Position numbers and translations under genes: made by a program
Part shown: positions 3,503 through 52,344 of the stretch, piece by piece
Position numbering within the stretch: the first letter of the stretch is position 1
Layout of the letters: every line of letters starts with the position of its first letter
The notes under the pieces: generated by a model
The model's input: only the letters and a program-made list of their open reading frames with translations
Told to the model about the DNA's origin: nothing
The model's database searches: none
Source of the DNA: Macrostomum lignano
Taxonomy: Eukaryota
Length of the DNA: 54,116 bases
Direction of reading: 5' to 3'
Assembly (NCBI GenBank): GCA_002269645.1
Contig: NIVC01004225.1
Span: 1 to 54,116, forward strand

Positions 3503-4145
<643 letters not shown>

Positions 4146-4150
4146 CTCAC

Positions 4151-13954: not shown

Positions 13955-14404
<450 letters not shown>

Positions 14405-14439
14405 CTACTACCTTATAAGAACAAAGTTGAATAAATGGC

Positions 14440-15116: not shown

Positions 15117-15785
15117 AAAGACACAATGTATATTAGTAGTACGGAGTTATAAAAATGTCTCTAAATCAGACGATCAAGACGTCAAAGTCTAAGACATCTT
15201 CATGATTTGCGGATCAGATGTCCCTATCAGTGTCATCATATTGTTTCTGTATTGCAAATACCAACTAAACTAAGTGAAGAAAAACAAAATAACTTAAAAA
15301 AGCAGAAAAACAAAGTGTTTTTGAATTCACCAGGCTGCAATATCCAGAGCTGTTTTAATTATTTCAAATACGAGCTATTTCCAATCGCGTATCAGTCAAT
15401 AATCCAGTAGCAATATAAAACTATATTGTTATATTATAACATTACTATATAATTAGCGGCTATTTCGGATGAGCAGAAATATGTTAATAATAAAGCTGCT
15501 GCATGTAACAAACAATTGATATATAACCTATGCAACTTATGATTAGAATTGATTAACCACAAACATAACCAGATATTCTCAAAATTTATTAATAATACAA
15601 TCGTAATAATAAATTTACTAATTTCCTAACGAGATAGCAGGACACAGGCAAATATTAAGCATAGTGGCATGTGTAGTAGAAAAAGAATTGAGAACACTTA
15701 GTAGAAATCAGAGCTTGCTTCTGCAGTTAAGTTAAAGTCGGGTTTCACAAAGCAGCGGGCGATGGTAACTGTAATGGATTGCGGA

Positions 15786-18700: not shown

Positions 18701-20338
18701 GCAACTGAGGATCTGGGAAGCTGGACCAGCAACTGAGGATCTGGGAGGCTGGCGCAGCAACTGAGAATCTGGGAGGCTGGCGCAGCAACTGAGGATCCGG
18801 TCACATACCTGTGATAGTAGCGGCACGTGGCCACAGGCTTGGGCAGCACCACGCCGCCGGTGTAAACGGCCTGAAACCTGCCGGTGAGGTTCACCCTCCT
18901 GGTGATCTCTTTGATCAGCACGGGCGCCACCCGTTTGCCTCGCAGCCGCTTGTGGACGCACAGGAAATTAATTTCGACCATTTCTACCCGACGGTCGCGA
19001 ACTCGAATCCCAGCCGGTATGGCGCTGATGAAGCCGACCAGCTTCCTGTTGCTGCGCACCCGAACTCCGACGTGCCAGTCAGAGCGCCACCCAGGCGGCT
19101 GCAGAGCCCAGCGGAGGAACGCGGGCGAATAGTCGAATCTGATTGGTTCGATAAAACAAATTTTGCGAGCACTTTTACTTCAACAGATTAAGCTGAACGG
19201 CTGACACAACAATATGATTTAACAATCATTCAAGTAAAAATTAAAATTCATCATTTTGAAATCTACCAGGGTTGTCAGGACTTGGATGCTTTAATGTAAC
19301 AATCCTAAGGATAGAAATTTAGTAAATTAGAAGAAGATAAATGAGGTAATTTATTACGCTCATAGGAAGAGATTCTTATCCAAAGTATCCATCATGATGG
19401 GATTCTAATACCCATAAATCTTTATGATAGGATTCTAATTCCTACAGATAATTAGGATGGGAATCTATCCCCACAATTCTTCATGATGGGATTCTAATCC
19501 CCACAGATCTTCATGATGGGATTTTAATCCCTACAGATCTTCATGATGGGATCTTAATCCCCACGGATCTTCATGGTGGGATTTTAATCCCCACAGATCT
19601 TCATGATAGGATTCGAATCCCCACAGATCATCACGATGGGATTCTAATCCCCACAGATCTTCACGATGGGATTCTAATCCCCACAGATCTTCATGATGGG
19701 ATTCTAATCCCCACAGATCTTCATGATGGGATTCTAATCCCCACAACTCTTTATGAAGGGTTTCTAATCCCCAAAGATTCTTATGGTGGGATTCTAAACC
19801 CGAAGAATGTTTTAACTGACTCTAATCCTTACAGATCATTAGGATGAAATTAAATTTTTTCTAAGAGTATAGCTCACCTAAACAGCTCGTCCTCATCCTC
19901 CACATAGTTCTCATTAAGCAAAGTGTACAGCTCTTGCAATTGAGCATCGTTTTGCAGGTCAACTTCGCTCCAATCAAACATATTGGGTATATCGTAGGGC
20001 GTCTGTCTGATCTGGTCTCTAGGCTTGTCCTCTTCAATTGGCTCGCTAATTGGTTTGGATTCAGTGGTGAATCCCTGTGGCACAGGCTGGGTGGCCCAGA
20101 ATTTGTAGTCTCTCTGTTTGGCTTCATCTAAACGTCGTGGTGCGCTGGTGGAAGCTGAACCCGAAGCCGCTGCAGCAGCCGCAGCAGCAGCAGCAGAAGA
20201 GGGAGCCACTCGAAGTGCATTCATACTCTCAGCTAGACTGCCACCCTTAGCACCAGATGATTGCTGCTGCTGAGGAGACTTGCTTTGTGAACCTGATGCT
20301 CCATCTTTGTTGTCAGAGTTGCCTTGGTCTCCAGACAT
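15786..20338 (-). CDS. NMT: Glycylpeptide N-tetradecanoyltransferase (N-myristoyltransferase), ~463 aa
   Basis: Exons 20338-19878, 19138-18809, 18633-18428, 18217-17844 and 15806-15786, in phase (1392 nt). Motifs: [79 protein letters not shown], and terminal VGLVLQ*. Confidence 0.96.
15924..17800. repeat. Higher-order repeat in the last NMT intron: 18/19-bp GGGATGGGGAGACAGGTG tracts separated by a constant ~99-bp unit
   Basis: The constant unit ACGGTTCAGACAATTAGAC...TTTTAACAGGT starts at about 15924, 16412, 16752, 17358 and 17661. Confidence 0.95.
18268..18372. repeat. 21-bp minisatellite in NMT intron 3 (CTGACACTAACTTTGGCTGTC)
   Basis: About 4-5 copies. Confidence 0.85.
18697..18797. repeat. 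27-bp minisatellite in NMT intron 2 (CAGCAACTGAGGATCTGGGAGGCTGGC)
   Basis: About 4 copies of the same family as the ELOVL intron 3 array. Confidence 0.88.
19390..19850. repeat. 30-bp minisatellite in NMT intron 1 (CCCCACAGATCTTCATGATGGGATTCTAAT)
   Basis: About 15 copies with degenerate ends. Confidence 0.93.
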
Positions 20339-29771: not shown

Positions 29772-29900
29772 TCAGTGGACTGAGGAGGGCGACCGCTTCG
29801 ATGGGACATCGTCGTACGCGCGGCTCAAAGACAGTCGGTTCGTCTCGAGCGACCCGTCGGCCAGCTTCATGTGACTGATGAGGCTCAGAAGACAGCCGAG
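29772..29900 (+). pseudogene. Fragment of the lectin-like gene family (end of the constant tract only)
   Basis: CAGTGGACTGAGGAGGGCGACCGCTTCGATGGGACATCGTCGTACGCG...CAGCCGAG matches copies A/B/D. It contains an in-frame TGA (ATGTGA vs ACGTGG). Confidence 0.85.
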
Positions 29901-30982
29901 TTGCCAACTTTGCCTAATCGAGTCATGGCACCGCAGTTGCCGCAGCTCCCTGTCTGAACAGCTAGCAGAACTGGACAACGTCTCTTGACTGCAATAAGCA
30001 GTCGAAATCGAGCGAAATACCCTGAAACTTGGTTTCAAAGAAATTTTGAAATTAAAATCATTGAATGCAGTTGCCCCGTAAGTTTTTATTAAAGGATCAT
30101 TTGGAAGTCACATTGAGATTCCCACGAAAACGTTGGACAGCAGTGGAAGGCCCTGTTCTCAGAATTGACGTTCAACACGTTTCAGTTCAGAAAACCTTTT
30201 TATTTCTGATCGGATCTAGAGCATAATAATAGTGCTATAGGAAAAAAATAGAATTCTTCATATCAAGCAATGTGAAAACTTCTAAGATAGGACCAAGTGG
30301 TTCGAATTTCGCATTGAAGCCAGTTTTCACTGCCCATTGCTCATACGTTTAGTCAGATAGAAAGTTTTCAGTTTTTGAGCATGTGAGGTGTCTTGTGAGA
30401 TTTACTTGAGTTTGAAACCGGAAGTTTCGCTAGAAACAGAGGACTTCCCAATGCATTTACGAGTATATGTAGAAGCGAAAACAAGTTCCAGCGAAAGTGG
30501 AAGAGTGGGGTGTCCTTCTGATTTAGCTATCAGTGGCATGGCAACGCGGAAGTCCGGGCAGTTGAGGTTGCATCCTTAGGATTTCGCTGCTTCTGCCTCT
30601 AAAAAGCTCTGCTCTCAACAGTAAGCCACAAGTCAACTCATTTGAGAACTGAGCTTACCGATGTACACCGAATTAATCGATACTGGGCCACCTCTGATAC
30701 GCTTTACTGCTTGTTGCGGCAACATGCCAGGGCTGCCCCTCCCCACCTCTTGACAAATGCAGGACTCCCTGCCTCACTGGGAGTGGGAACTAGATAGAGT
30801 TAGCTGGATGCAGAGGCTCATGCAGATCAGGAGCCGCCACTGGATGTCGCTATGGCCACGCCACTCCCCTCCCCACTCCGCTGCGGAGAGCCAGAAAAGA
30901 CAAGCTGAAGCCATTTAATTGGAACGGAGCGGCGAAAACCCAAGCGCAACTTCTCGTGCTCAGCACCGCTAAGCCGCAAAAA

Positions 30983-32030
30983 ATGGAGTCACCGGGCAAA
31001 AATTACGGCTGCAAAATCATCATGACAGCCGCTCTTCTTCTGCTGCTGCCTCTTGCTGACTCGACGAGCTGCCGCAGGCGCTGGTGCCAGTACCGGATGC
31101 CGCACTGCCTCAACGAGACCTCGGCGCTGACTCGATGGAGCTCGCAAAGCCTGCAAGCCTGCGTGTTGAAAGCGAGCAGCGAGCCTGACGACCTGGTGCT
31201 TGAGTGGAACAAGCAGACAGGTGTGTGCTCGCTCTTCCACTACCAGCAGGTGTGTCGCACGATGCAGGCAAGCGGTGCCGTCGCGATCGGAGCTGGAGCT
31301 GCAGTGCAGCAGTCGCAGTGCTCGGTGTATCGCGCGTTGTCGTTGGCGAGCTGCGACGCCTCGCTCGACGCTCAGCTGGTGGGCGTGTGGCTGGCAGGTG
31401 GGAGCAGCCGGTTCAGCAACCTGGTGTGCCAGAGCGACAGCGGCAGCCACCGACTGGAGAGCGCGAACCTGCAGTGGACTGAGGAGGGCGCCCGCTTCGA
31501 CGGGACATCGTCGTACGCGCTGCTCAACGACAGTCGCTTCGTCTCGAGCAACCCGTCGGCCAGCTTCACGTGGCTGATGAGGCTCAGGAGGCAGCCGAGG
31601 ATCCAGCCCTTCATGGAGGCTGTGTCCTGCTCAAACTTGGTTATAGTGGGGTCCCACTTTTGGGAGTACGATTCGGTCAATAGGCTTTATATCAGCAAAA
31701 CGATATCAAATTCCGAAAGCAAACAGGTTCGTGCTGTACTCCGACAATGAGAATCTGCTGCCAGCGAGCGACGAATCGTGGATCAACATCGGGGTCACCG
31801 TCAAAGCCGGCAACTCAACTCTGTCGTCAATGTACTTTAGCGGCAGTTTTGTCTCTGCCAGCGGCGCCACTGAACAAGCCGATCATCAGCTGCCCTGCCA
31901 GTTCCTGTCGGTGGGTCGCAGGTTCGCCGGAGGAGGCACCAGTCTCAATGGAGTCGTTCGAGCCGTGGCTGTCGCCAACACCTCAATGACGCTGGCAGAA
32001 ATCAATGAGTTCTTCTCTGTGCTGCCTTGA
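30983..32030 (+). CDS. Secreted Cys-rich (PAN/apple-like) + ConA/LamG-like lectin protein, copy A (one frameshift ~31730)
   Basis: Signal peptide (IIMTAALLLLLPLADS), Cys-rich N-terminal domain, and LamG3-type motifs ARFDGTSSYA, SFTWLMRL, WINIGVT, LSVGRR, LNGVVRAVAVAN and EINEFF. The frame shifts between ORF 30956-31750 and ORF 31731-32030. This could be a pseudogene or a sequencing error. Confidence 0.8.
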
Positions 32031-32800
32031 AAACATCGGCCGCTTTAATTGCAGCTTGTAGTCAGACAAGAAGTTCAAACTATTAAACCCAAATATTAAA
32101 GCCGCTTACTTCATTCTTCGGTTTTTCAATGTCCCCACCCAAGCTAAATTCTGTACCTGATTGGCGTTGCACAAAAATTAATCTAATGAAACGATCATGA
32201 AAGTTGCCTTTTGACTTTCAGAGGAGTTCAATTCAATTTCTGTGAAGCCTTGGTTTACCTGTTCTGTGTCTAATGACTTTAGGTGAACCCTCCATTGCTG
32301 GCTGTTCATGGCAAATAAAAAAAAATTTAGGAGGGCTGCGGGCACCCTGCCGTAGCGCCTTCGGCGACATCGTCCCACAATATCCAGTGCTGACGGCAAT
32401 CCTGCCCAGGTGTGTAGATTCTCATTCTTGTTTTGCGAGAACTTGTTTTGAGGAGTTGTTGAGTACAAAAAAATAGCCATGTTGGCACAGGACTCAGACT
32501 CATGGCGATGGGGCTTATCAATGTCAGCTTAGTCCATCTTGTTTATTAGCCCCAGGCCCTTATTCACTTTTAATTTCTCGGAGAAACGCCCTACAAAACT
32601 CTCGATGCTGTCAATCTCATTCTCAAAGTCAATAGGAACATTGTATTGAAAATTTATGCCTGTTACTGGACAAGTTTATTTAATTTTTCCAAACAAAGGT
32701 ACTTAAGTTTAGATTTGAGATGCCCCAGTCTCATTGAATTGTAAAGCGTAAATCGGCGCGTAGTTTTCTTAAATTTCTGAGTTTTGAACTCAGTTCTGGT

Positions 32801-34713
<1,913 letters not shown>

Positions 34714-35239
34714 ACTCACTAGTCTGCCTTTCGGATGCTGTTTCACCCAACACTGTCCCGTCAGTATTTATATACTTGATGGTGTCCGTCAGTCCAGCCT
34801 CTTAATTCCCACATCGCGATATTGGCTGTTGAAGAAGACTTTTTCGCTTACTGAAGTGTCCTTATTGGGGTTGGCTCATCCAATTGACAGCTGAAACCGG
34901 AGTGTTTGCTGTTATTCAGGTGTTGCTTAATAAAGATGGTAGAATAGCAGACATTGGTCAAGTCGTTGGAAGGTCGCTGTTGGGAAGCTGTAAAACTGCG
35001 TAAAATACTGATTTACAGACTCACGAAAAATAGTAATCTCTACGCGTTATGAAATCGTCTGCTTCAAATCTGCTATCGCTACATAATTATTAAATATCAA
35101 TTCTTGACAAGCACCTCTGAGGTGACCAAAATTCCAACAATAAAGTATGTAATTTCCAAATACGATTATAAAAGCTCTGCGATAATTTTATGGGATGAAG
35201 TTTCTCAAGCATCGTTAAATGAAGCCAAACAGGTCTCAT

Positions 35240-35960
35240 TCACCGATAACATTCTCCAGAATTTGGTGTGCCTTGTGTTGTTGTGGCGGTGACACGCCTG
35301 TCACACGCTGGAGTCTATGTCGGCCTGGAGCTCCGAGTTCGTCAACTTTGTCGTGTACGCTCACTCGATTGCGTGTGTGCTGCGGGCGCCGTTTCTGACC
35401 GCGCACAGCTGGACAATGCTGTTCTGAGGTGCGCGGCGTCAAGATTCGCTGGCCTATCCGCGCCAACCTGTGGTTCTCCAGAAACCGGACAGCCGCCTGC
35501 TTGGCTTTCTTCATCTGGAGAGTGAGCTCGGCTACTTTGGTAATCCACTGTCCACGTGTTCCCAGTACAAAACCATGGAGAACTACGGGCTGCAGACGGT
35601 CACTCCGGTAGCCGTCGCCGTGCTGACCAACATATTTCTGCTGCGATCCCTGCGTCGCTAAAGACTTTGCCTGGACTGGACAGCCTACATGTAATCGAGA
35701 CTTTGGCGAGACTTACCACTCGAGAGATAGTGCTTCTTCTGCAGCTGTACCGGCTCTGCCAGATCCCCATGATCTTGTTCGGATTCAACGTCCTGCTGAA
35801 AATTCCGGCCCGTCTACATTGTCAATTGGCCTCGTCGGGAACCTCATTCCTCGATGCAAGAGACGTTAACCACTACCCCTTTGCAACTACATGTGCGATG
35901 CACTCGGAAGTATACAGTTACATATTCACCCGCAGAGAGCATACAGATAGTTCGCATATC
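35240..35960 (+). pseudogene. Decayed rhodopsin-type (peptide-receptor-like) GPCR remnant
   Basis: Fragments in different frames resemble TM1 (NILQNLVCLVLLWR), TM3/ICL2/TM4 (APFLTAHSWTMLF* ... IRWPIRANLWFSRNRTAACLAFFIW), TM5 (LQTVTPVAVAVLTNIFLLRSLRR) and TM6 (IVLLLQLYRLCQIPMILF). There are multiple stops and frameshifts. Confidence 0.5.
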
Positions 35961-36635
35961 ATTGCTCATTAAAAAATTTAATATTATTTTTTAAACTAAT
36001 GGTAATTACCTTTTAACATGCCCACCCCGACTTTAACATGGACATCCATGTAAGTAAGTAGAAGGGTTGAACCTTGGATGCCGTTATTGCCCCCTTACCC
36101 AGGCCACAATGCACATCTACATGCTGCCTCAACATCAACAACAACAACCTCAACAGCCTTTGCATCGTGGCAGCTAATGGCTATAAAACCAGCTATAGCA
36201 CGCAGCCTATATCGCACCCTTGCTGACTCATGAAAAATTCAGAGCTGCAACAACTGCCCACGGGATGGGAGGATGGAGATAGGGACTAATCAAGAGAGAC
36301 ATAAAGCAACTTCAATAGCGATGATGAAGAGAACCTGCTGCCCACGCAGGGAGCCTGCAGAGCTCTGGCCCCCGCATCAAATAAAATGCAGCTGATTAAT
36401 GGCAATGGCTGGAAACTGCTGGCCACCCCACTGACTACCCCAGCGCAGCCCATCAACGCTTTGCCCGCATCTCATAAGAAGCAAGCGAGCTCCCCTGTCG
36501 CTATGGCCAAGCCACTCCCCTCCCCACTCCGCTGCGGAGAGCCAGAGAAGACAAGCTGAAGCAATTTAGTCAGAACGGAGCGGCAAAACCCACGCGCAAC
36601 TTCTCGTGCTCAGCACCGCTAGGCCGCAAAGCAAA

Positions 36636-37688
36636 ATGGAGTCACCGGGCAAAACCCACAGCTGCAAAGTCGTCTTGACAGCCGCTCTTCTTCTGCTGCT
36701 GCCTCTTGCTGACTCGACGAGCTGCCGCAGGCGCTGGTGCCAGTACCGGATGCCGCACTGCCTCAACGAGACCTCGGCGCTGACTCGATGGAGCGCGCAA
36801 AGCCTGCAAGCCTGCGTGTTGAAAGCGAGCAGCGAGCCTGACGACCTGGTGCTTGAGTGGAACAAGCAGACAGGTGTGTGCTCGCTCTTCCACTACCAGC
36901 AGGTGTGTCGCACGATGCAGGCAAGCGGTGCCGTCGCGATCGGAGCTGGAGCTGCAGTGCAGCAGTCGCAGTGCTCGGTGTATCGCGCGTTGTCGTTGGC
37001 AAGCTGCGACGCCTCGCTCGACGCTCAGCTGGTGGGCGTGTGGCTGGCAGGTGGGAGCAGCCGGTTCAGCAACCTGGTGTGCCAGAGCGACAGCGGCGGC
37101 GGCGGCAGCCACCGACTGGAGAGCGCGAACCTGCAGTGGACTGAGGAGGGCGCCCGCTTCGACGGGACATCGTCGTACGCGCTGCTCAACGACAGTCGCT
37201 TCGTCTCGAGCGACCCGTCGGCCAGCTTCACGTGGCTGATGAGGCTCAGGAGGCAGCCGAAGGTCCAGCCGTTCTTAGAAGCCGTTTCCTGCTCAGACAA
37301 GAACACCTACGGACCTCATCTTTGGGAGTATAGCTCCTCAAATCAGTTCTACTTCACAAACTCTGGCACAAGTTCAGAGGCTGAAAATATTCGAGTAGAG
37401 TCACAATTAAATGTGCTCCCGGCGAGCAGCGAGTCTTGGATCGACATTGGGATTGTTTTCAAACCCAGCAGCTCAGCGCCGGCAATTCTGTACATCAGCG
37501 GCAGCTTCGTAGGAAGTACGCAACTCGACCCTGTCCCAAGTGTTCGGCATAGCTGCTTCTACTTGTCGGTGGGCCGGCGTTTTTACGGTAACAACTTATT
37601 TTTGAAGGGAGTGATCAGAGCTCTAGCGATCGCCAACGCTTCCATGGCAGAGGCTGAGATACGACACTTTTTCTCTTCGTTACCTTAG
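36636..37688 (+). CDS. Secreted Cys-rich + ConA/LamG-like lectin protein, copy B (intact, ~350 aa)
   Basis: Intact intronless ORF with the same architecture as copy A. It also shares ~140 bp of upstream sequence with copy A (36495-36640 vs 30845-30990). Confidence 0.88.
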   Translation: MESPGKTHSCKVVLTAALLLLLPLADSTSCRRRWCQYRMPHCLNETSALTRWSAQSLQACVLKASSEPDDLVLEWNKQTGVCSLFHYQQVCRTMQASGAVAIGAGAAVQQSQCSVYRALSLASCDASLDAQLVGVWLAGGSSRFSNLVCQSDSGGGGSHRLESANLQWTEEGARFDGTSSYALLNDSRFVSSDPSASFTWLMRLRRQPKVQPFLEAVSCSDKNTYGPHLWEYSSSNQFYFTNSGTSSEAENIRVESQLNVLPASSESWIDIGIVFKPSSSAPAILYISGSFVGSTQLDPVPSVRHSCFYLSVGRRFYGNNLFLKGVIRALAIANASMAEAEIRHFFSSLP

Positions 37689-37991
37689 TTGACCCGATTA
37701 GAAATTTTTCATAAGCTCTACGACATTTTGTAAAGCTTATTGGCCTCTCTGCATCTCCCTCTTGAGTTATATGCTTTATTTATATTTAGAAGTGCGAATT
37801 TTCAAATGTTTTGCTCACAGTGCCGAAGGTACCCTGATTTTATACTGCCATTGTTTCTGACTGAACTCGTTTTTAATATTCAATTTTAGTAGTTGCTAAG
37901 CTTTCTTATCTTCTGTGTCTGCGTCTGCGGATAAATAAAAAGGAAGAAAAATGTTTTGCATGAGAATATTAAATCAGAATATTGCCAGTTA

Positions 37992-39051
<1,060 letters not shown>

Positions 39052-40573
39052 TAGTAATGACGTGAGGCTACCCAGTGGAAAAAAAGGGCTCGGGCCACCG
39101 GAGGGGTGTCTGGCTCGGGCCGAGGGTGGCAATGCACAGCTAAATCTGGCTCGACCCAACGCTGGCCCGCCACCAGCGCGCCAGCGCTTTGCCTCCTATT
39201 TTTCGCGTCTTTTATTTTTGCCCCATTCTACTGGTAATTTTATTCTATTATAGTTCCACCTACCGTGCCTATAAATCATCAGAGACAGTGTGAGTTTGCA
39301 CTGTGCACACAGCATAGTGTGGTAGGTGGGCTACCACCGGTGTTTTTTTGCTTTGTCCCCGGGTTAGGCCCATTTTGTCCACCATGAGGTGCGAAATGAC
39401 GTGTCCCGCCATCTCTCGTTCCCGGGTTTGCCCCTTTGGTTGGTCCCGCGGTTGCGCCCTTGTGTGGTTTGTCCCTTTCCCGTCTGTGGTCCCTTCTGTT
39501 GCCCCACCCCCGTGCCAAATTTACTTTGCTTATTTTCGGTTCAATATTTTGTTTTTTCCAATCGATGCACCACCGCTGGATCCCGTAACTGATCTCAGTG
39601 TTGGCCTTGTTCACCCCAACTTGTGTCCTAACTTCTCCGTGTATTATTTAATCAATGCGAAATCGCAGCGTTTTACTAACTTTCCTACTTTTTTACTTTT
39701 TATTTTTTCTTCTTCCTCCTCCACCTTTTCCTCCTCTCATCCTCCTACCCCTCTGCCTCTTGTGTTTAGCTTTTAATTAGCTGTTTAGTCTATCAATAAA
39801 GCTTAAGAATCATAAGTTAGTTTAGCACCCCGGCACGCCGGATGCACTTCATCGATCGTATCTCGCTCTCTGTCGCATCAATACTTATTCACTATCGTTT
39901 GTCGACTTAATAAAACCGTAAACAGTCTGCTATTAATTTTCCTATCAATTAACTGAAGCCTCGTTAGTCTATATTAAGTTATTTGCCCGTGGGGCGTAAA
40001 ACAACAAGTTCTCAACTCAAAGAAAGTCTGAGACTTCAACGTTCCGTAATACGTAAATTACGGTGGTGGCAGCTCTACCCTACTGAAAGTAAGCAGATCA
40101 GCACATTCAACGCGCAAATTCTACGGTGTCAAAATCTACGGTGTCTACCATCTGAACGACCGTGCCGCTCTAACGACCGCTCTGTTACGATTACGACTAC
40201 CCTCCCCCCGGACCTGAGGAACCCGGCAGTCGGAGTAAAGCAGGAGAAATGCGTCCGAATTTTCTGCAAAATTTTTTTTCGGCTTTACAAGTGCCGAAGA
40301 TCACGAATGCGGCAGTTTAAAGTTTAAAGAAAACCGCTCCAAGCTCCCAAGTTCAAGATTTTTATTTTCTCCCCCCCCACCTCAATAGCACCAACAAAAG
40401 TACAGGAAACATGTACTTGGCTCGAACATTTACATTTCGCGCCAAAATTCAAAACGTAACTTTTGGCAATTTAAAGTTTGTCGGAGAACGAATTGTCAAG
40501 CGGACAATATATACGCATTGTATTTTTATTTTTACATTCTTCTTGCGGTATACATTTTTGGCTAAAAAGGTCA

Positions 40574-41208
40574 TTGGAAATACAAGACATTCAGTGGTAA
40601 ATAAGTCAGTGGAAATACAAGACATTCAGTGGTAAATAAGTCAGTGGAAATACAAGACATTCAGTGGTAAATAAGTCAGTGGAAATACAAGACATTCAGT
40701 GGTAAATAAGTCAGTGGAAATACAAGACATTCAGTGGTAAATAAGTCAGTGGAAATACAAGACATTCAGTGGTAAATAAGTCAGTGGAAATACAAGACAT
40801 TCAGTGGTAAATAAATCAGTGGAAATACAAGACATTCAGTGGTAAATAAGTCAGTGGAAATACAAGACATTCAGTGGTAAATAAATCAGTGGAAATACAA
40901 GACATTCAGTGGTAAATAAGTCAGTGGAAATACAAGACATTCAGTGGTAAATAAGTCAGTGGAAATACAAGACATTCAGTGGTAAATAAGTCAGTGGAAA
41001 TACAAGACATTCAGTGGTAAATAAGTCAGTGGAAATACAAGACATTCAGTGGTAAATAAGTCAGTGGAAATACAAGACATTCAGTGGTAAATAAGTCAGT
41101 GGAAATACAAGACATTCAGTGGTAAATAAGTCAGTGGAAATACAAGACATTCAGTGGTAAATAAGTCAGTGGAAATACAAGACATTCAGTGGTAAATAAG
41201 TCAGTGGA
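40574..41208. repeat. 35-bp near-perfect tandem repeat (GACATTCAGTGGTAAATAAGTCAGTGGAAATACAA) inside the transposon
   Basis: About 18 copies. The unit is itself a dimer of TCAGTGG(T)AAATA. Confidence 0.97.
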
Positions 41209-41243
41209 ACTCATGCAAGCAATTAAGGCTACAAAGGGCTGAA

Positions 41244-43882
41244 TCACTCAAATGTGAGTGAATCGTCCTCGGAACTGCTTTCCCGCGTTCGCTTCCGAGG
41301 ACGGTCCGCATCTGCAGTTCGTCTTCCTCCTTGCTGGTCGTTGTTTGCCTGCGCCACTACAGCCGCCGCCGCTGAGGAATCGCGACGCTTTTGACGGCCT
41401 CCCGCTCTGTCGTGCGCGTTTTTCAGGACGGAGATGACTGCTATCTCCACATCGCGCTCGGCAGGCCTCTGACCTCCGTGCATCTTCGAGATGGCAGCTG
41501 AAGCAAAATAAGTGTAGGAATATTGCATCACTTGTACAATGGGCTAGGCGTACGAAAAAGTAAAGATTCCATAATTATGTTGGAAAAATCCTTCCACAGT
41601 GCTTTTGGTCTACTAACAGTAGCTAAAAATTGAACATATAAGTCCTAAAAGAAATCCGAATTTTGTCCTTCCAATGCATGCCCAAAAACAATGGAGCGGA
41701 TTAAGCATAAGATAAAGAGATTACACTCTGCCGACAGCACTAAGCACTGCACTAAGATACGACTCCCCACTGAAGCATGAAAGTTTAATAAAGAGAGCGG
41801 CCGGTGATAATGAAAGCAAGGCGAAGACTTGTGCATAATTTGGTGTACCAACTGACTGATGGCTATGATCCAAAAGAAGAAACATGCTCACCTTGGAAAG
41901 CAGGCAGGGCATTCGGAATGCCAGAAGGGTGTCGGAGAGCTCCAACTGACTCCTCTTCTGGAGATCTCGGCCGCTGTAGTTCACCTGCTGCTGCATCTCG
42001 ACTGTGAGGCATTTGTCCACCATTCGACGGACGGTGTTATATGTGGTGGCCGATTTGCAGGCTAAGAGATATGGCACCTGCATGAAAAGGAGCGATATAG
42101 CAATTGTTTAGAAAAAGATATAAAAAAGTGCCTTCATGTACAGTCAGGTTGAATTAGCATGCTATGTTATTGTAATATTTTTATTTTCTCTATTTGCTTT
42201 GAGTAGAGCAGTCAAATCATACATAACAGCTATACCCACTAGGCTATTCCCACAAAAATACAAACTGATCGAATTGTCAAAAGTCAAGTTTGTCTCCTTA
42301 AACTTAGAAGGTTGAGGCTGACTTGTACAACGAGCTAGACGTGCGAAAAAGTAAAGATTTTATAATTATGTTTGAAAAATCCTTCCACAGTGCTTTTGAT
42401 TTACTAACAGTAGCAAACAGTTGCACATATAAGTCTAAAAGTAATCCGAATTTTGTCCTTCCAATGCATGCTCAGAAACAATGGAGCGGATGAAGCATAA
42501 AATAGAGATTACACTCTGCCGACTGCAGAGTGAGCACTGCACTAAGATACGACTCTGTCAAATCGGTAGCCTTGTCAAATTGTACACTGTTGAGTTGTGA
42601 ATAAGGAGAGGGAACTTCTGTGCTACAAAAATATTGTTCAATCCAGATTGTCCCTTACCCGCGCCATCATCGCCTCAGAAGATGTGACGAAGTTCGCGTA
42701 CTCCCTCCATGACCCTACTGGCACCGGCTCGGTCTCAGCTGCAACGGCTTGCCCACCATGCCCTCCAATCGCAGCCAGGAGATCGCGACGCAGGCGCTGC
42801 ATTTCTGCCCTCATCTGCTGCACTTGTTGCTCCATCTGAGACTTCAGCTCTACTCGGGTGATGTGCAGCTGCCGGAAGATGCTGTTGAGGGCAAAAGTTT
42901 GGCCTTCTAAGAGGGCAAAAGAAGGGCAGTCATGCGCTGTTCTCAATCCGGCCCTTGAGGTAAAAAGTTTGCTGACCCTTGCACTAAAAGCACTAGGCTT
43001 AGGCACATTAGATAAAAACTGAACTGAACTATTATATCAGCTGGTACCCTTCGCTTCCAAGACTCACTAAAGCCAAAGCCGAAAACTGGATGACAATTGC
43101 TTGAAATTCAAAAAGGGCATTTGGAGGATCATGCAAAAAAGTTGGTGGGGGGCTTCAGCACCCCTGTGCCCCCCCCCCCCCGGTTCCGACACCCCTGCGC
43201 AGATAGCAAGCATTTCCTGATAGCAAGCATCTTCTAATAGCAAGCATTTCCTTGTACGGCTCGTAGCAAGCATCTCCTGGTAGCAAGCATCCCCTGATAG
43301 CAAGCATCCCCTGATAGCAAGCATCCCCTGATAGCAAGCATCCCCTGATAGCAAGCATTCCCTGATAGCAAGCATCCCCTGATAGCAAGCATCCCCTGAT
43401 AGCAAGCATCCCCTGATAACAAGCATCCCCTGATAGCAAGCATCCCCTGATAACAAGCATCCCCTGATAGCAAGCATCCCCTGATAGCCAAGCATCCCCT
43501 GATAGCAAGCATTCCCTGATAGCAAGCATCCGCCCAGCCCAGATAGCAAGCATCCCCCCAGCCCCAGCATTACTCCCCCAGATTAACACCACCCACCCTC
43601 AGATTACCAGCACTCCGCCCAGATTAGCACTCTGCCCAGTTAGCACTCTGCCCAGATTAGTACTCCACCCAGTAGCACTCCACCCGGATGCTTGCCTCAG
43701 CTGCCACAATCTCGAATTGAGAAAATTAATATTTTCTCATTTCTCTAAAATAAATAAATTTTATACAAATATCTCCGCATACCTAGTTGTTTACTATGAG
43801 TAGTATGACTGGTTTGCAGATAGTTTGGCCACGGCATGACCAGCGCTTTGCCTTTTGTATGGCCAAGCCGAAGAAGTGCCAT
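41244..43882 (-). CDS. Spliced transposon accessory gene, DUF4806/BEN-like C-terminal domain
   Basis: Probable exons 43882-43783 (tentative), 42906-42659, 42077-~41892 and 41497-41244. It has a coiled-coil (ELKSQMEQQVQQMRAEMQRLRRDL) followed by TVRRMVDKCLTVEMQQQVNYSGR...AISK...DVEIAVISVLKNAHDRAGGRQKRR, matching the recalled DUF4806 pattern. The exon 3 donor phase is unresolved (phase 0 vs a required phase 1). Confidence 0.65.
43200..43560. repeat. 17-bp minisatellite (GATAGCAAGCATCCCCT) in the presumed first intron of the transposon gene
   Basis: About 18 copies, followed by degenerate CCCAGATTAGCACTC repeats to ~43690. Confidence 0.93.
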
Positions 43883-45617
43883 GCATTTGCCGAGGTTGAA
43901 TTATCTTGCATTTTTATGTTAAACGATGTGATTAATGACAAAGCAGATACCTATAATGGTGTTATAATGTCAAATAGGGGCATAGGTAAGTTTTTGTAAT
44001 GGCCACCATAAGGCCAACTGGCCACCATAAGGCCAACTGGCCACCAAGGCCAACTGGCCACCATAAGGCCAACTGGCCATCGAATGGCCACCGGTGGCCC
44101 AAGCCATTTTTTTCCACTGGGTAGTAGAATTTGCCGAATTAGAAGTTAGCCTCCACTGGGGCATTGATTGCGATTTAATATATTTGAGATCCAAGCGTTC
44201 GCTCAAAGAGCAACATGCACTTAAGTATTGTGGATGTACACTAGCTTGATGTAGCTACATTATAAATAGACAAGGGCGCAATGCGAAAGGTAGAGTGGAC
44301 TGCAACTAGTTAGATAGTTAATTAGTTATTTGTTAGTTATAACTACAGTATAAGAAGATAAGTCTGTAAATTATATTATTGAGAATTTATATCAGGATTC
44401 CGGAACCGGATAAAAATCGATCAGGTCAATCGAAGCAAAGAAAAGTTACAAGGCAGATAAACAAATATGAGTAGTTAAATAGGCATCGCAAAAGTATCAA
44501 AAAAGAGCAGCAGGAAAGTTAAATTAAAACTATAAGACATTTATATAGACTTTGGGGTCGGGAAACAACACAAAAAACTCAGGCGCTAGCGAAGGCATTG
44601 CTAGTTTAATCTAAAAAACACGTTAAAAACACGTCTATTTTAATGCAACGAATAGGTGCAATTTTGGGTGCTGGTTCGGTTCTCGAGCTCATCAAGGAAT
44701 ATTATTAAAATTACATTTAATTATAATTTTATAAATATAAAATAACATTTATTAACATTATTCATATATATGTAGATATACAGACATAGATCATATTTCT
44801 TTTGTATTCTAACAACTTATCAATATCGACAGAACTTTTTAGGAAGGAAGTTCCATTTCTGTCTCTCATACCTGATATAGTCTCATTTTAGCACCACAGC
44901 CAATATTTTTCCATAAAACTTGGCCTCCCATTGTCACTAGGGGGCCAGCTACCCTTCTTCCCTACCCCCAGTTGCACCTTGATTTTATATCCGGACTTGA
45001 GCAGAAGACTCATATAGTCTGTGCAGATAAAACATTGCACATTTAGTCGAAGTTTGCAGAAAATATAGACTACTCATTGTTGAGAAGATTGCTCAGGTGA
45101 CAACTATAAGTACTACTCAAGTAGAATGACGGTAAACAACATTTTGTTCAAAAAAGTTTTAGGAGACACCGAAAAAATTACATTACCGTTATTACCTTCT
45201 ATAGAGGCAGACCCAATGTTCATTTTTTGATATGTCTTCACGTCTCATAGCTCTATTGATGATCATTGAACAGAATTATTCTTAGTTAGTTAGTTAGTTA
45301 GTTCATTATTCTTAACTGACTGCGTTAAAAAATGTGAAACAGAATGACAAAATACATTCACATTCGAAAAGCCCTATGAATATCAATAGGGATCGGGAAG
45401 ACATATCGAAAGATAAACAATTGATCATATATCAAATGCAATAACAATATTCGGGGCTAAATACGCTCCTATACGAAAGTTTCCGGTTGCCGCCATAGAA
45501 TTTTGCCTCCCTAACTAAACCTGTCTCCTAAAATTTTCCAAGAAACCTAATAGTTCCCGTCTTTCTACTTGAGTATGTAAACCGGCCGTCATTGGGACAC
45601 TGTAAAGTACATGCAGC

Positions 45618-46649
45618 TCAAGGAAGCAGATTGAAAAAAGCGCGAATCTGCTGCTCGGTCAGTGAGCCGTTGGCGATGGCGATGGCGCTCACCGTGCCCT
45701 TCAGGGTGAAGTTTACCGATGGAGTCTGGTATCTGCCGATCAGAATCGCCGGGCAGAGGAGCTGCGAGTATGAAGCACCGACGTTTCGAGTCACGTTGTA
45801 GTCAAAGGACGAGCCACTGAACAGATTGCTGCTGATAGCGTCGGCGCCAATGCTGACTGCGATGTTCACCCATGAGCTGGAGCTGCTGGTAACAAATTCA
45901 CCAGAGGAGTGCAACAAGACTTTCTGAGCCAGCCTGTTGTTCGTGCCGAAATAAAGTTTGTTGGCAGAATTAAATTCAGCAAAAAATGGACCGATGATAG
46001 AGAAATCCGAACACGAAACCGCTGCTATGAAAGGCTGGACCCTCGGCTCCCTTTTGAGCCTCATCAGCCAAGTAAAGCCGGTAAAAGTATCGATAGAGAC
46101 GAAGCGACTGTCGTTGAGCAGCGCGTACGACGATGTCCCGTCGAAGCGGGCGCCCTCCTCAGTCCACTGCAGATTCGCGCTCTCCAGTCGGTGGCTGCCG
46201 CTGTCGCTCTGGCACACCAGGTTGCTGAACCGGCTGCTCCCACCTGCCAGCCACACGCCCACCAGCTGAGCGTCGAGCGAGGCGTCGCAGCTCGCCAACG
46301 ACAACGCGCGATACACCGAGCACTGCGACTGCTGCACTGCAGCTCCAGCTCCGATCGCGACGGCACCGCTTGCCTGCATCGTGCGACACACCTGCTGGTA
46401 GTGGAAGAGCGAGCACACACCTGTATGCTTGTTCCACTCAAGCACCAGGTCGTCAGGCTCGTTGCTCGCTTTCAACACGCAGGCTTGCAAGCTTTGCGAG
46501 CTCCATCGAGTCAGCGCCGAGGTCTCGTTGAGGCAGTGCGGCATCCGGTACTGGCACCAGCGCCTGCGGCAGCTTGTTGTCGAGTCAGTCCCGATGAAAA
46601 GGCAGAGGAGTAGCTGAATGACTGGAGCGACAATGTTGCTGTTGGCCAT
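45618..46649 (-). CDS. Secreted Cys-rich + ConA/LamG-like lectin protein, copy C (intact, 343 aa)
   Basis: Intact ORF with its own signal peptide (MANSNIVAPVIQLLLCLFIGTDS), the shared constant tract, and a divergent C-terminus ending LKGTVSAIAIANGSLTEQQIRAFFNLLP. Confidence 0.88.
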   Translation of the reverse strand: MANSNIVAPVIQLLLCLFIGTDSTTSCRRRWCQYRMPHCLNETSALTRWSSQSLQACVLKASNEPDDLVLEWNKHTGVCSLFHYQQVCRTMQASGAVAIGAGAAVQQSQCSVYRALSLASCDASLDAQLVGVWLAGGSSRFSNLVCQSDSGSHRLESANLQWTEEGARFDGTSSYALLNDSRFVSIDTFTGFTWLMRLKREPRVQPFIAAVSCSDFSIIGPFFAEFNSANKLYFGTNNRLAQKVLLHSSGEFVTSSSSSWVNIAVSIGADAISSNLFSGSSFDYNVTRNVGASYSQLLCPAILIGRYQTPSVNFTLKGTVSAIAIANGSLTEQQIRAFFNLLP

Positions 46650-47829
46650 CTCATTAACTGCAGCTGTTTCGGCAAATAGTTATTGTATTTTACTCTTCCT
46701 TGTATTCGTTCCGAACTTGGACCTCCAATTGAGTGTCCTTGTTACTCCGCTTGACAGAAATGAGCGGCTGGAGGTTTCGTGCTGGTCTGAAAAAGTTTTG
46801 AGCGCATTTTCGGCTGCTTTTTTCCACGGGTTTTATTTGCTCTGCCTCAGCGTCTGTGGGAAGCAGCTGAAGCAGCCATCCCCCCCCTGTGCCTCCAACA
46901 CCCCCAGAGCCCCTCCGCCAGCTGCCGGCATTCAATGGGGCCAGTTGGATTTTTTGTTTTATTTCTCTCCAACTGAATATCCACCGGCAGTTCTGCTACC
47001 ATCAATTCTGAAAAGCCCATTTGATTTTATTCTATAACGTTAATTATGGAGTAGCTTGTTGAGCTGCCACACGGCAAGAAACTATTTTTAGGCAAATCTT
47101 CATAAACAACTGCGCAGACTTTTACCGGTTAAGGGGTGGCTACTCTTTGGCACCTAATACAGAGCCAGACCATAAGAGAGTCAATGATCAACTCTACCTT
47201 AACCCCAAATGAATCTTTGCAATTAGGATTTTTTCCAAGCCTACTGGACTAACTAATTTCCCCTGCTCAAGGGCGCTGGGGGAGATGAACTTTTCCTTGA
47301 GTAAAAAAGGCTGAAATGAAAAACATCACGTGATTGCAACTAGTCGCTTCATTCTTCTTTGGCGAGGCTTCAAGACGGATGCCATAGTTACTAACAAGTG
47401 CAGGGCAACTGCTGCAACTACAGTAGCTCTTAAGAATCCATTATGTCAGCTGCTAGGAATTCACAGAACAATGGAAACTGGAAGACTTGCCAATTAATAT
47501 TAATTGGAATCTTGACAGGAAATTTTTGTGAAATTGGATTTTTTCGCTAATTACTTCCGCGGTATACTTGAATACCTTTAGTCCGGACAGTACTACTCTG
47601 AAATATATCTGCAGATTGTTTCAAACCTTTTACCAATTTGATTAATAAATATTTGGAGGCTTTTAATAGACTATAACTATTTGAAAGAAGCATTTATTAC
47701 TTGTTTTATGTACAATTCACCAATAAATACCGATAATTAAATGGTTCAATCCAAAGCCCGAAACTAATATCTGGCACAATTATTATGTAGAAGCCGTCCC
47801 AAAAATACATCTAGATAGGGGTGAATGCG

Positions 47830-48685
47830 TGCTAGATCGGGATGGGTGTGCTAGATTGGGATGGGTGTGCTAGACTGGGATGGGTGTGCTAGATTGGGAT
47901 GGGTGTGCTAGATTGGGATGGGTGTGCTAGATTGGGATGGGTGTGCTAGATTGGGATGGGTGTGCTAGATTGGGATGGGTATTCTAGATTGGGATGGGTG
48001 TGCTAGATTGGGATGGGTGTGCTAGATTGGGATGGGTATGCTAGATTGGGATGGGTATTCTAGATTGGGATGGGTATGCTAGATTGGGATGGGTATTCTA
48101 TATTGGAATGGGTGTGCTAGATTGGGATGGGTGTTCTAGATTGGGATGGGTGTGCTAGATTGGGATGGGTGTTCTAGATTGGGATGGGTGTGCTAGATTG
48201 GGATGGGTGTTCTAGATTGGGATGGGTGTGCTAGATTGGGATGGGTGTTCTATATTGGAATGGGTGTGCTAGATTGGGATGGGTGTTCTAGATTGGGATG
48301 GGTGTGCTAGATTGGGATGGGTGTGCTAGATTGGGATGGGTGTGCTAGATTGGGATGGGCGTGCTAGATTGGGATGGGTGTGCTAGATTGGGATGGGTGT
48401 TCTAGATTGGGATGGGTGTGCTAGATTGGGATGGGTGTGCTAGATTGGGATGGGTGTTCTAGATTGGGATGGGTGTGCTAGATTGGGATGGGTGTGCTAG
48501 ATTGGGACAGGTGTGATAGATCGGGACAGGTATGCTAGATCGGGAAAGGTGTGCTAGATTGGGATGGGTGTGCTAGATTGGGACAGGTGTGATAGATCGG
48601 GACAGGTATGCTAGATCGGGAAAGGTGTGCTAGATAGATCGGAATAGGGGTCTGCTAGATTGAGACAGGTGCTAGATCGGGACAT
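47830..48685. repeat. 19-bp minisatellite (GCTAGATTGGGATGGGTGT)
   Basis: About 45 copies. Confidence 0.97.
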
Positions 48686-49089
48686 TCATTTAATGCAAGA
48701 CTGCACTGGTTTTGCAGGCACTTCCCCAATTTTATTTGATAAAAATTCTGGCTGTAAATCTCTCTCAACTTTATTCTTTGCGGTCTCAGGCTTTCACAAT
48801 TTTCACAATATTCACAATTTACTAGTTTAGCGTCTTACCTTGGTTAGCAATGTATTTTGAAGGTGCCACATCTTAGGCATTTTACCTGCACCGGTCTTTG
48901 CGAAACCTGTAAAATGCATATGTTGCGATGGAACTTCAATATGACGCTTTCAGTTAAGTTTTGAAGGAAAACTGCTGCAACAGTCACTGGGTTAGGGCAC
49001 GGACATAAGCAGACAGAGAGCCGCCCGCGTCAGCCAGCACGAAAGGAAACACGAAAACGAAAGGCAGACTATACCCGGTGAAAACGGTA

Positions 49090-50436
49090 CCCAGGCAAGA
49101 AGCGTCCCTGAGTCACTTGCGTCGCCCCAGAGTCGTTGCAGACGCGTTGCAGATGACAGGTCAAATACGAGGTCAAACGTAGAAAACACAGCGTCGCTGT
49201 AGAGCTGGAGTCGATGAGCATGCATTTTCTATTCGAAATGGCGATCCAACAGTCTGTTTGAGGCCGGTAGTACCGACTCTGTAACGCGTCCAGAACGCCT
49301 CAGAAGTGACGCACTAACGATTCTACAGTGAAGCTAAAGCGCTTCTTCTGCGACTTTTATGCAACTGCAGAATGCCGCTGAAACGCCGGAAATGTGACTC
49401 TAATTCATCAAGCCACGCAAATACGCTTCAAACACAACTCAGTGACTCTGATGCGACTCTGGAACGCCTCACATACGACTCTACGGCTCCAGAATCGTTG
49501 TACCGTCGCCCCAGAGTCACTAGAGTCGCCCCAGAGTCACTAGAGTCGCCCTAGAGTCACTAGAGTCGCCCCAGAGTCACTAGAGTCGCCCCAGAGTCAC
49601 TAGAGTTGCCCTAGAATCACTAGAGTCGCCCTAGAATCACTAGAGTCGCCCCAGAATCACTAGAGTCGCCCCAGAATCACTAGAGTCGCCCCAGAGTCAC
49701 TAGAGTCGCCCCAGAGTCACTAGAGTCGCCCCAGAGTCACTAGAGTCGCCCAGAATCACTAGAGTCGCCCCAGAGTCACTAGAGTCGCCCCAGAGTCACT
49801 AGAGTCGCCCCAGAGTCACTAGAGTCGCCCCAGAATCACTAGAGTCGCCCCAGAGTCACTAGAGTCGCCCCAAAGTCACTAGAGTCGCCCCAGAGTCACT
49901 AGAGTCGCCCCAGAATCACTAGAGTCGCCCCAGAGTCACTAGAGTCGCCCCAGAGTCACTAGAGTCGCCCCAGAGTCACTAGAGTCGCCCCAGAATCACT
50001 AGAGTCGCCCCAGAGTCACTAGAGTCGCCCCAAAGTCACTAGAGTCGCCCCAGAGTCACTAGAGTCGCCCCAGAATCACTAGAGTCGCCCCAGAGTCACT
50101 AGAGTCGCCCCAGAGTCACTAGAGTCGCCCCAGAATCACTAGAGTCGCCCCAGAGTCACTAGAGTCGCCCCAAAGTCACTAGAGTCGCCCCAGAGTCACT
50201 AGAGTCGCCCCAGAGTCACTAGAGTCGCCCCAAAGTCACTAGAGTCGCCCCAGAGTCACTAGAGTCGCCCCAGAATCACTAGAGTCGCCCCAGAATTTTT
50301 GGCGACTTGTACCGGGAAATCTCGTCGTTTTAGAGTCGTTTAGAGTCACTTCTTTTCTATTTGACCTGTCATCTGCAACGCGTCTGCAACGACTCTGGGG
50401 CGACGCAAGTGACTCCGGGACGCTTCTTGGCCTGGG
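49090..50436. mobile_element. Foldback/MITE-like TIR element (~1.35 kb) with an internal minisatellite
   Basis: 49082-49167 is the inverted complement of 50358-50444 (~85 bp, few mismatches). The ends read TA|CCCAGG...CCTGGG|TA. No coding capacity was seen. Confidence 0.85.
49510..50293. repeat. 20-bp minisatellite (AGAGTCGCCCCAGAGTCACT)
   Basis: About 39 near-perfect copies. Confidence 0.98.
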
Positions 50437-51302
50437 TACCGTTTGTTGAATGCATGCATGTATTTTAGAAGAAAAGCTTGGAAACTTTGATTTTGACACA
50501 ACTCGTAATGGCAAATTAAAGGGCCTGTCAACTTGAGCTCATAAAGTGTACATAACAGTCCTTAAATTATTTACAGTTCCAAATTTGTCGCTTTTTTGCC
50601 AAACTTAGCTTTCTGGAGTCACGACTGTGAGCAGAATGACGTATCATTTGCATATATCGGTTACTCGATCGGGCTCCATTTTATCAGCTTAAGTCGACAG
50701 GCCCTATCCTCGTTACCGAACAGAGCCCACGAGCTACACAGCTTTCTGTTTAAAAACAGACTCTAAACATAGCGGCAACACTGAAAGACGAAAGACGAGT
50801 CTGATTGGGTGTGAGTGCGAGTGGCTGGATGGATCTTAAAGCCAGAATTTGAGAATGATGATGTCGAGTCTTCACGTCAGCTATTCTCTTTGGTAATAAG
50901 ACATGCCGGGATCCAAGAATGAATCAATTATTTGGTAAAAAGTAAGTATGGCTTTTGCAAACAATGCAAACGCCAAAAAACTGACACTCATCGACTATGT
51001 AAAAAGGGCTTATCGCTTGCAATGAGTGCCCAGCAGAATCCACAACCCAACAAGTCAAATAGCCAGTTTCCTTGTAATACATGTCTATTTGAAGTATTTG
51101 AGCTTGTTCAACGACAGCTGTGCAAAGCAGGCCTGCAAACACTCTTAGCTATATCAATCATTCGAGTGTCTTTCTTATTTAAGGAAACCCTCCAGCATTC
51201 TCAACGGCTCTTCTGCTATTCTGCAACTGCGGCCTTAGCTTCAGCTATCGGTTCTGTTGTCGAAAATTCTGACTGTCCATCAGTTTTAAAATTCGCACCT
51301 AA

Positions 51303-52344
51303 ATGAGAACAAAAGATATCTTTGCTTTCCTGATGGTGCTTTTATTGGCAGTGGGAAAGGGCACGTCTAAAAGCAGCTGCGGCAGGCGCTGGTGCCAGTA
51401 CCGGATGCCGCACTGCCTCAACGAGACCTCGGCGCTGACTCGATGGAGCTCGCAAAGCCTGCAAGCCTGCGTGTTGAAAGCGAGCAGCGAGCCTGACGAC
51501 CTGGTGCTTGAGTGGAACAAGCAGACAGGTGTGTGCTCGCTCTTCCACTACCAGCAGGTGTGTCGCACGATGCAGGCAAGCGGTGCCGTCGCGATCGGAG
51601 CTGGAGCTGCAGTGCAGCAGTCGCAGTGCTCGGTGTATCGTGCGTTGTCGTTGGCGAGCTGCGACGCCTCGCTCGACGCTCAGCTGGTGGGCGTGTGGCT
51701 GGCAGGATGGAGCAGCCGGTTCAGCAACCTGGTGTGCCAGAACGACAGCGGCGGCGGCGGCGGCCACCGACTAGAGAGCGCGAACCTGCAGTGGACTGAG
51801 GAGGCGCCAGCTTCGACGGGACATCGTCGTACGCGCTGCTCAACGACAGTCGCTTCGTCTCGAGCGACCCGTCGGCCAGCTTCACGTGGCTGATGAGGCT
51901 CAGGAGGGAGCCGAAGGTCCAGCCATTCTTAGAAGCCGTTTCCTGCTCAGACATGAGCTCCTTCGGACCTCATCTTTGGGAACATAATTCCGCAAATAGA
52001 CTGTACTTCAACAAAGCGGTCCCTCCTCAGACAGCAGAAACTTTTTATTCTACTCCCAAACTATAAATCTGCTGCCAGCGAGCAGTAAAGCGTGGATCAA
52101 CATTGGAGTCTCCGTGAAATTTGGCGAAGTATCTTCATCAGCACTTTTTTATGACGGCAGCTTTGTAGAGGCCGGTGGAATTCGCAGCGTTGCAAATACT
52201 TTTCATTCCTGCCTTGTCCTGTCGGTGGGCCGCCGGTTCTCCGGAAGCGGCTCGACTCTGCGAGGCACCGTGAGAGCTGTGGGGCTGGCCAACGCCTCAA
52301 TGACGGAAAAGCAGATTGTCGAGTTCTTTCGCCAGTTGCCATGA
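51303..52344 (+). CDS. Secreted Cys-rich + ConA/LamG-like lectin protein, copy D (two apparent frameshifts)
   Basis: It has its own signal peptide (MRTKDIFAFLMVLLLAVGKG) and the constant tract. There is a 1-nt loss near 51805 (GAGGCGCC vs GAGGGCGCC) and another near 52058. The C-terminus ends LSVGRRFSGSGSTLRGTVRAVGLANASMTEKQIVEFFRQLP*. It may be a pseudogene or a consensus error. Confidence 0.78.

Follow-up and report, generated by a model that had tools for sequence, protein, structure and literature searches.

Evidence for partial interlocus gene conversion in a tandem family of lectin-like genes from the flatworm Macrostomum lignano

Background

The window analysed here, the whole of contig NIVC01004225.1 (54,116 nucleotides; assembly GCA_002269645.1) from the flatworm Macrostomum lignano, is metazoan nuclear DNA and carries, within 21 kb, four paralogous lectin-like genes that we call copies A, B, C and D. 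The four share an internal tract of near-identical DNA, on either side of which their sequences are widely diverged. A first-pass annotation of the locus had described this arrangement as a 'constant' half homogenised by gene conversion, joined to a hypervariable C-terminal half, and had read the two together as a diversified recognition system. We report that interlocus gene conversion between old duplicates is strongly supported as the origin of the mosaic, which fits neither purifying selection nor recent duplication, and that the diversification of the C-terminal half looks like ordinary old divergence, the constant tract being the anomaly.

Results and Discussion

Four gene copies and their shared tract

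Copies B and C have uninterrupted open reading frames (ORFs). Copy A carries one frameshift, an extra A, and copy D carries two, a change of GGG to GG at ~51803, within the constant tract, and a 1-bp change near 52062, both of which need a base to be added (Table 1). Introns were considered as the source of these frameshifts and were rejected, as A and D show no extra length in comparison to B and C. The earlier description of four intronless paralogues therefore stands as regards the number of copies, none of which needs an intron, but the reading frame is intact only in B and C. Copy A may be either a pseudogene or a gene with an assembly indel. Copy D is likely a pseudogene; private substitutions within the tract are most numerous in this copy, an excess of singletons that fits a decaying gene. 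A decayed relic of the tract, derived from its 3' end, lies 1.1 kb upstream of copy A. It contains an in-frame TGA, and its identity is 91-93% with A, B and D as against 84% with C.

With its limits set by 30-nucleotide windows at ≥90% identity, the tract is ~490 bp long in all four copies, ~550 bp long in A, B and D and ~590 bp long in B and D. Pairwise identity among the four copies across the tract is 94.6-98.0%, indels counted. In a four-way DNA alignment the copies are unalignable upstream (~20-48% identity), reach 96-100% identity from the codon of the mature N-terminus (…SCRRRWCQY), which forms the 5' boundary of the tract, fall to ~45-60% in the 3' half and are reduced to noise past the stop codon; the 3' boundary lies within the C-terminal domain. 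A given pair of copies differs at 2-13 of ~474 tract sites, almost entirely through singletons, whereas in the 3' half the count is 169-217 of ~385 (Fisher p 1e-58 to 1e-87). Both the near-identical tract and the sharp drop of identity that follows it are thus as first annotated, the coordinates then given being correct to a few bases. Copies A and B alone share similarity upstream of the tract as well, which suggests an A/B conversion tract of greater age or length.

Table 1. Coordinates of the gene copies, the shared tract and other features of the window
Feature	Position	Strand	Remarks
Copy A	30983..32030	+	348 aa once one surplus base near 31721 (AAA run) is taken out
Copy B	36636..37688	+	intact 350-aa ORF: signal peptide, Cys-rich N-domain, predicted ConA-like/LamG_3 domain
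Copy C	45618..46649	-	intact 343-aa ORF; most divergent 3' half, shortest converted tract
Copy D	51303..52344	+	two 1-bp frameshifts, ~51803 and ~52062
Tract common to all four copies	A 31064-31551, B 36717-37214, C 46579-46089, D 51372-51868		from identity windows
Tract extension, A/B/D	A to ~31610, B to 37274, D to 51924
Tract extension, B/D only	B to 37308, D to 51962
Converted tract in A	31064..31612	+	with all copies to 31551, with B/D to ~31610
Converted tract in B	36717..37308	+	with C to 37214, with A to 37274, with D to 37308
Converted tract in C	46089..46579	-
Converted tract in D	51372..51962	+
Upstream region, 5' untranslated region and signal-peptide region of A	30845..31063	+	86-93% identical to B 36496-36716 only (~220 bp)
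Tract relic	29773..29899	+	127 bp from the 3' end of the constant tract; decayed
Alternative-frame ORF in tract, copy A	31200-31577	+	second sense frame
Antisense ORF in tract, copy A	30989-31450	-
GPCR-like pseudogene	35293-35848	+	in-frame stops, frame changes
ORF between A and B	34345-34746	-	133 aa, hydrophobic leader
ORF with thrombospondin-type-1-like motif	33561-34124	-	followed by a long (CAGA/TCTG)n microsatellite
ELOVL-like exon	10636-11244	-	HVYHH motif
ATP synthase subunit c-like	13955-14380	-
N-myristoyltransferase-like	17712-20338	-
Minisatellite/microsatellite arrays	40563-41209, 47810-48684, 49505-50296, 3699-4432, 9854-10388, 14394-15124, 15897-17618		periods ~70, ~57-114, ~20-60 bp; (CAGA)n runs included

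Evidence for interlocus gene conversion

The claim that gene conversion homogenises one half of these genes is borne out by the contrast in silent-site divergence, by the unalignable flanks, by the staggered ends of the tracts and by a high GC content at third codon positions (GC3). Nei-Gojobori estimates of synonymous substitutions per synonymous site (dS), computed for each half as the first-pass annotation had proposed, are far from equally low: they lie between 0.009 and 0.058 in the tract, whereas in the 3' half they are at least 1.35 and run to saturation. The dS of the signal-peptide region is saturated in every pair except A/B. Self-comparison of the region from 26 to 54 kb shows that similarity between copies is confined to the genes and that their flanks are unalignable and, because no similarity is left outside the genes, the duplications must be old. 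The nearest relative of a given copy also shifts along the gene, such that A matches B upstream, B matches D at the 3' edge and C departs from the others ~55 bp earlier; the staggered ends and the changing nearest relative imply that several conversion events have taken place.

Base composition points in the same direction. GC3 is 0.82-0.84 in the tract, as against 0.52-0.66 in the 3' half, and in a zone of 29 codons that is unconverted in C it is 0.62 in that copy and 0.83-0.93 in the others. The private substitutions within the tract, 14 in number, comprise ten from GC to AT and two from AT to GC, an excess that is expected if a bias in conversion keeps GC above its mutational equilibrium. 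Conversion is therefore probably GC-biased.

Taken together, we consider it very probable that the four genes are old tandem duplicates within a Macrostomum-restricted family, one segment of which is homogenised by repeated interlocus conversion, probably with a GC bias. Repeated interlocus (ectopic) conversion would keep an internal segment of ~490-590 bp, which begins at the mature N-terminus and takes in the first strands of a predicted beta-sandwich, nearly identical among copies, and would leave the signal peptide, the last ~135 codons and all of the flanking DNA to diverge to saturation. Conversion tracts would stop where homology collapses, such that the junction would be self-reinforcing and would be passed on to daughter subfamilies. 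Selection that favours a shared N-terminal module and opposes homogenisation of the C-terminal part may help to hold the junction in place, though we infer this selective reason.

Several points weigh against this account. A GENECONV-style run-length permutation test on polymorphic sites, of the kind suggested by the first-pass annotation, gave a weak or uninformative result for most pairs, because all four copies have been homogenised and few polymorphic sites are left in the tract; the per-segment dS and Fisher tests were used in its place. The three frameshifts and the junctions are as read from the assembly, and the environmental contigs described below come from short-read metagenome assemblies and are possibly chimeric within the repeated part. 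The 5' end of the tract is the same in all three lineages (A/B, C and D) and the 3' junction is common to subfamilies that are merely ~30-38% identical. As random conversion alone predicts neither the shared 5' end nor the shared 3' junction, an extra constraint may exist.

The encoded protein

A hydrophobic leader of the typical kind stands at the start of all four proteins, from which they are predicted to be secreted. Residues 176-342 of copy B match the Pfam family Laminin_G_3 (PF13385) with 29.9 bits, against a cut-off of 27.6; copy C has no match to PF13385, and the relative P0029 scores 20.5 bits, under threshold. For B, AlphaFold2 with an 18-sequence alignment of the family gave a model whose mean predicted local distance difference test score (pLDDT) is 69, with values of mostly 75-93 in the beta-sandwich of residues ~160-350. 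In a Foldseek comparison to the PDB, the C-terminal domain of B matches ConA-like lectin jelly rolls at E ~5e-8. Among these are the lectin-like domain of trypanosomal sialidase and, from tetanus and botulinum neurotoxins, the HCN subdomain. A sequence search of the PDB with the family profile returned nothing above threshold; the matches below it were to sialidase carbohydrate-binding domains (E 0.05). The assignment of the C-terminal domain as a ConA-like (Laminin_G_3) beta-sandwich, proposed at first from motifs, is thus supported by the Pfam match of B and the model, and the domain may bind a ligand.

The N-terminal, Cys-rich domain, for which Pfam gives no hit, is less clear. Neither the whole proteins nor the isolated domain match a Pfam PAN family at E≤1. 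The domain modelled alone has a pLDDT of 56, a low confidence, and from this poor model the Foldseek list is nearly all PAN/apple (SML-2, MIC4, AMA1, the N-domain of HGF and factor XI), with a best E of 0.01 and none ≤0.001. The predicted order of strands and helices and the Cys-rich make-up fit PAN/apple. The PAN/apple likeness first suggested by the cysteine pattern hence finds an echo in the structural matches but not in Pfam; the domain may be PAN/apple-like, which is a reasonable lead and not a result. In the model of B the junction between constant and variable sequence (…FTWLMRLRRQPKVQPF/LEAV…) sits in a hairpin within the predicted beta-sandwich, rather than between two domains.

Relatives and the recurring junction

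When 1.84 billion representative proteins were scanned exhaustively with HMMER, no more than 27 relatives came to light, their identity being 23-39%, together with the UniProt M. lignano model P0001, the short match of which is 91% identical. The relatives are M. lignano models and short contigs of JGI and ENA environmental samples, and those that are named in the databases are M. lignano protein models in every case. A word-indexed protein search with B returned one chimeric M. lignano model only, such that HMMER was needed to find the family; searching the contig collection for the exact sequences of B, C and P0001 gave no match. On these sequence comparisons the family is apparently restricted to the Macrostomum lineage. 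Most of its M. lignano models are plainly chimeric and bear names that include 'UBC core', 'Clathrin-link' and 'Reverse transcriptase'; the family is effectively unannotated. In the literature we found no paper on the lectin-like family or on gene conversion in Macrostomum.

Within P0001, 33 residues are 97% identical to the constant tract. As a side observation, this model reads part of the tract in the wrong frame (in comparison to positions 31250-31608 and 36903-37282 of the window) and splices it to a G-protein-coupled receptor (GPCR).

A codon alignment of seven environmental paralogues (L001-L007) contains blocks in which no third position differs, such as VWVMSDDEDASKSNLVCNGQTQQWQA and DGTSSKMTLENVNF, and alternative mosaic blocks, SGVEWTK as against [IV]NVTFTS; two full-length environmental genes switch between blocks of 100% and ~45% identity. 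These paralogues break abruptly past W-L-L-R-L-K-R, where the proportion of synonymous differences (pS) rises from 0.08-0.55 before the break to 0.58-0.86 after it, and GC3 is 0.63-0.72 in the constant part versus 0.43-0.60 in the variable part. Four of the environmental contigs begin inside the repeated part, as is expected when an assembler meets a repeat. We also observed that L001 and L002, which come from different JGI samples, share a signal-peptide block that is 100% identical (87/87 nt) and is followed by a block of ~45% identity. This arrangement is the opposite of that in the window, where the signal peptide is variable and the mature N-terminus constant.

A second M. lignano subfamily, comprising P0002 (a model holding two tandem copies), P0004 and P0028, is identical through …LLRMKRQPQVQ and diverges thereafter. 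The mosaic in the relatives therefore ends at the same junction (…W-L-x-R-x-[KR]-R), which recurs in three subfamilies and at least two organisms. An inherited, self-reinforcing boundary can explain this recurrence, since conversion cannot extend into heterology; alternatively, and this is the more interesting of the two, the boundary may be held by selection.

Alternative explanations

The first-pass annotation proposed a germline-encoded, diversified recognition repertoire, in which diversifying selection would act on the C-terminal, ligand-binding part whilst conversion and selection keep the N-terminal module. Signal peptides joined to a lectin-type fold, in a family that is expanded and taxonomically restricted, are in keeping with such a repertoire, and the recurrence of the junction suggests maintenance by selection. 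Hypervariability of the 3' half itself is not supported. Over the whole half the ratio of nonsynonymous to synonymous rates (dN/dS) is 0.18-0.37, with dS saturated. In windows of 20 codons the proportion of nonsynonymous differences (pN) is below pS throughout, except for one window at about parity, and no window has a clear excess of pN over pS, a test of low power given the saturated dS; in the sole unsaturated window (B versus D, columns 221-240) pN/pS is ~0.6. Nor is variation concentrated on the predicted loops, which the first-pass annotation had linked to ligand binding: the mean identity of the copies is 0.43 where strands and helices are predicted, as against 0.37 in coil (p=0.18). 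With dS saturated these tests have little power, yet none of them gives reason to invoke diversifying selection. Frameshifts in two of the four copies also sit uneasily with a working repertoire. We consequently regard the repertoire as doubtful, though it is the alternative that fares best, and any role in immunity, allorecognition or mating is a guess.

A related idea, to which we attach a lower probability still, is that macrostomids maintain a system with a fixed junction inside the beta-sandwich, in which a uniform module (for example for assembly with a common partner) is combined with a diverse C-terminal part and conversion is channelled or blocked at the junction. Though improbable, such a system, if it is real, would amount to a new kind of lectin-like recognition repertoire in flatworms, encoded in the germline.

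The possibility that the mosaic is an artefact of assembly, whether a collapsed or consensus-polished repeat or a set of chimeric joins, appears very slight. The 1-bp indels of A and D are typical of long-read assemblies, and the metagenome contigs of the relatives do break within the repeated part. However, the four tracts of the window lie 5-10 kb apart with unique sequence between them, a repeat of 500 bp is easily spanned by long reads, and environmental assemblies as well as independent protein models of M. lignano show the same pattern. Each copy, furthermore, has its own private single-nucleotide polymorphisms, its own state of a GGC-repeat indel and its own 3' end to the tract, which argues against collapse.

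Equally hard to credit is a constant tract that is a mobile or programmed cassette, moved by dedicated transfer or serving as the donor or target of somatic rearrangement, as in systems of the VSG or VLR type. The identity of the 5' end in all lineages and the conservation of the 3' junction across distant subfamilies are what such a cassette might leave behind, as are the stray 127-bp relic and a further copy that adjoins a GPCR paralogue elsewhere in M. lignano. In dot-plots and alignments, however, the ends of the tract show no terminal repeats, no target-site duplications and no transposase; the tract is the in-frame, homologous part of each gene, with a predicted beta-sandwich that spans the junction, and its staggered 3' ends fit ordinary conversion.

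Least credible of all is recent duplication with a very fast 3' half, or purifying selection alone on the 5' part: the constant part does encode a Cys-rich domain that is likely constrained, but its synonymous sites are identical too (tract dS 0.01-0.06), which selection at the level of the protein cannot bring about, and the saturated signal-peptide dS and unalignable flanks mark the duplicates as old.

ORFs of 125-156 amino acids are open in the second sense frame and in the antisense of the constant tract in all copies (Table 1). These are probably a by-product of the 65% GC content. Dual coding was set aside as a cause of the identity at silent sites, since at a GC content of 65% stop codons are lost in any case and the identity is already accounted for by conversion.

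Comparison with known systems

Interlocus gene conversion confined to part of a pair of tandem duplicates is a known process, of which human gamma-globin (HBG1/HBG2) is the classic case. Partial interlocus gene conversion has also been described in the tandem arrays of Trypanosoma brucei (PMC1855330), as has the 'mosaic divergence' of the HMA4 tandem paralogues of Arabidopsis halleri (bioRxiv 10.1101/2025.10.29.685298). The genes of the window resemble these cases in that one segment is near-identical, silent sites included, whilst the remainder and the flanks diverge, and in that the tracts are sharp-ended and up to a few hundred bp in length. They differ in that the tract is common to four copies and at least one more elsewhere in the genome, and in that the junction lies inside a protein domain and recurs in subfamilies of ~30-38% identity and in a second organism. 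What we describe is therefore a known process in an undescribed gene family.

Conotoxin superfamilies are likewise families of secreted proteins, in which the leader is conserved and the mature part diverges. As in these, one part of the paralogues is very similar and the other highly divergent. In the genes reported here, however, the signal peptide is one of the parts that diverge, the conserved part being a folded domain plus part of the next, and the identity of silent sites points to conversion rather than to differential selection.

At the level of structure, the predicted fold of residues ~160-350 is like that of other ConA-like/Laminin_G_3 domains, such as the neurotoxin HCN subdomain and trypanosomal sialidase (the LamG-like domain of the gp85/trans-sialidase family is covered in PMC4580646), but the sequences are 10-16% identical, none of the binding-site residues can be carried over and copy C falls below the Pfam threshold. 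To the PAN/apple domains of Sarcocystis SML-2, Toxoplasma MIC4, the HGF N-domain and factor XI, the N-domain bears a weak Foldseek likeness; in view of its lack of a Pfam PAN match, the best E of 0.01 and the low confidence of the model, membership of this group is not established.

Genomic surroundings

The GPCR-like pseudogene (Table 1), which precedes copy B by ~0.8 kb, and the GPCR portion of P0001 are homologous. Given that a GPCR and the constant tract are fused in P0001 and that a GPCR pseudogene lies near B, it seems likely from the sequences that the two were duplicated as a unit. Between A and B, the 133-aa ORF has sub-threshold matches to PAN_1 and PAN_4 (E 0.007 and 0.036), and the ORF with the thrombospondin-type-1-like motif has no significant Pfam match. 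Minisatellite and microsatellite arrays occupy much of the intergenic space. Upstream of the cluster, three further features, exons of housekeeping type, were recognised by eye, from ORF translation only: an ELOVL-like exon, an ATP synthase subunit c-like sequence and an N-myristoyltransferase-like sequence.

Conclusions

The locus provides a clean case, in a flatworm genome, of partial and probably GC-biased interlocus gene conversion, and it defines an unannotated, taxonomically restricted family of predicted secreted proteins in which a possibly PAN-like domain precedes a ConA-like one. In the gene models now available for M. lignano these genes are fused or mis-framed, and a mosaic of this kind is misleading for gene trees, for orthology calls and for assembly of the family from short reads. 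The recurrence of the junction, furthermore, poses a testable question, namely whether the boundary is held by selection or merely by the loss of homology.

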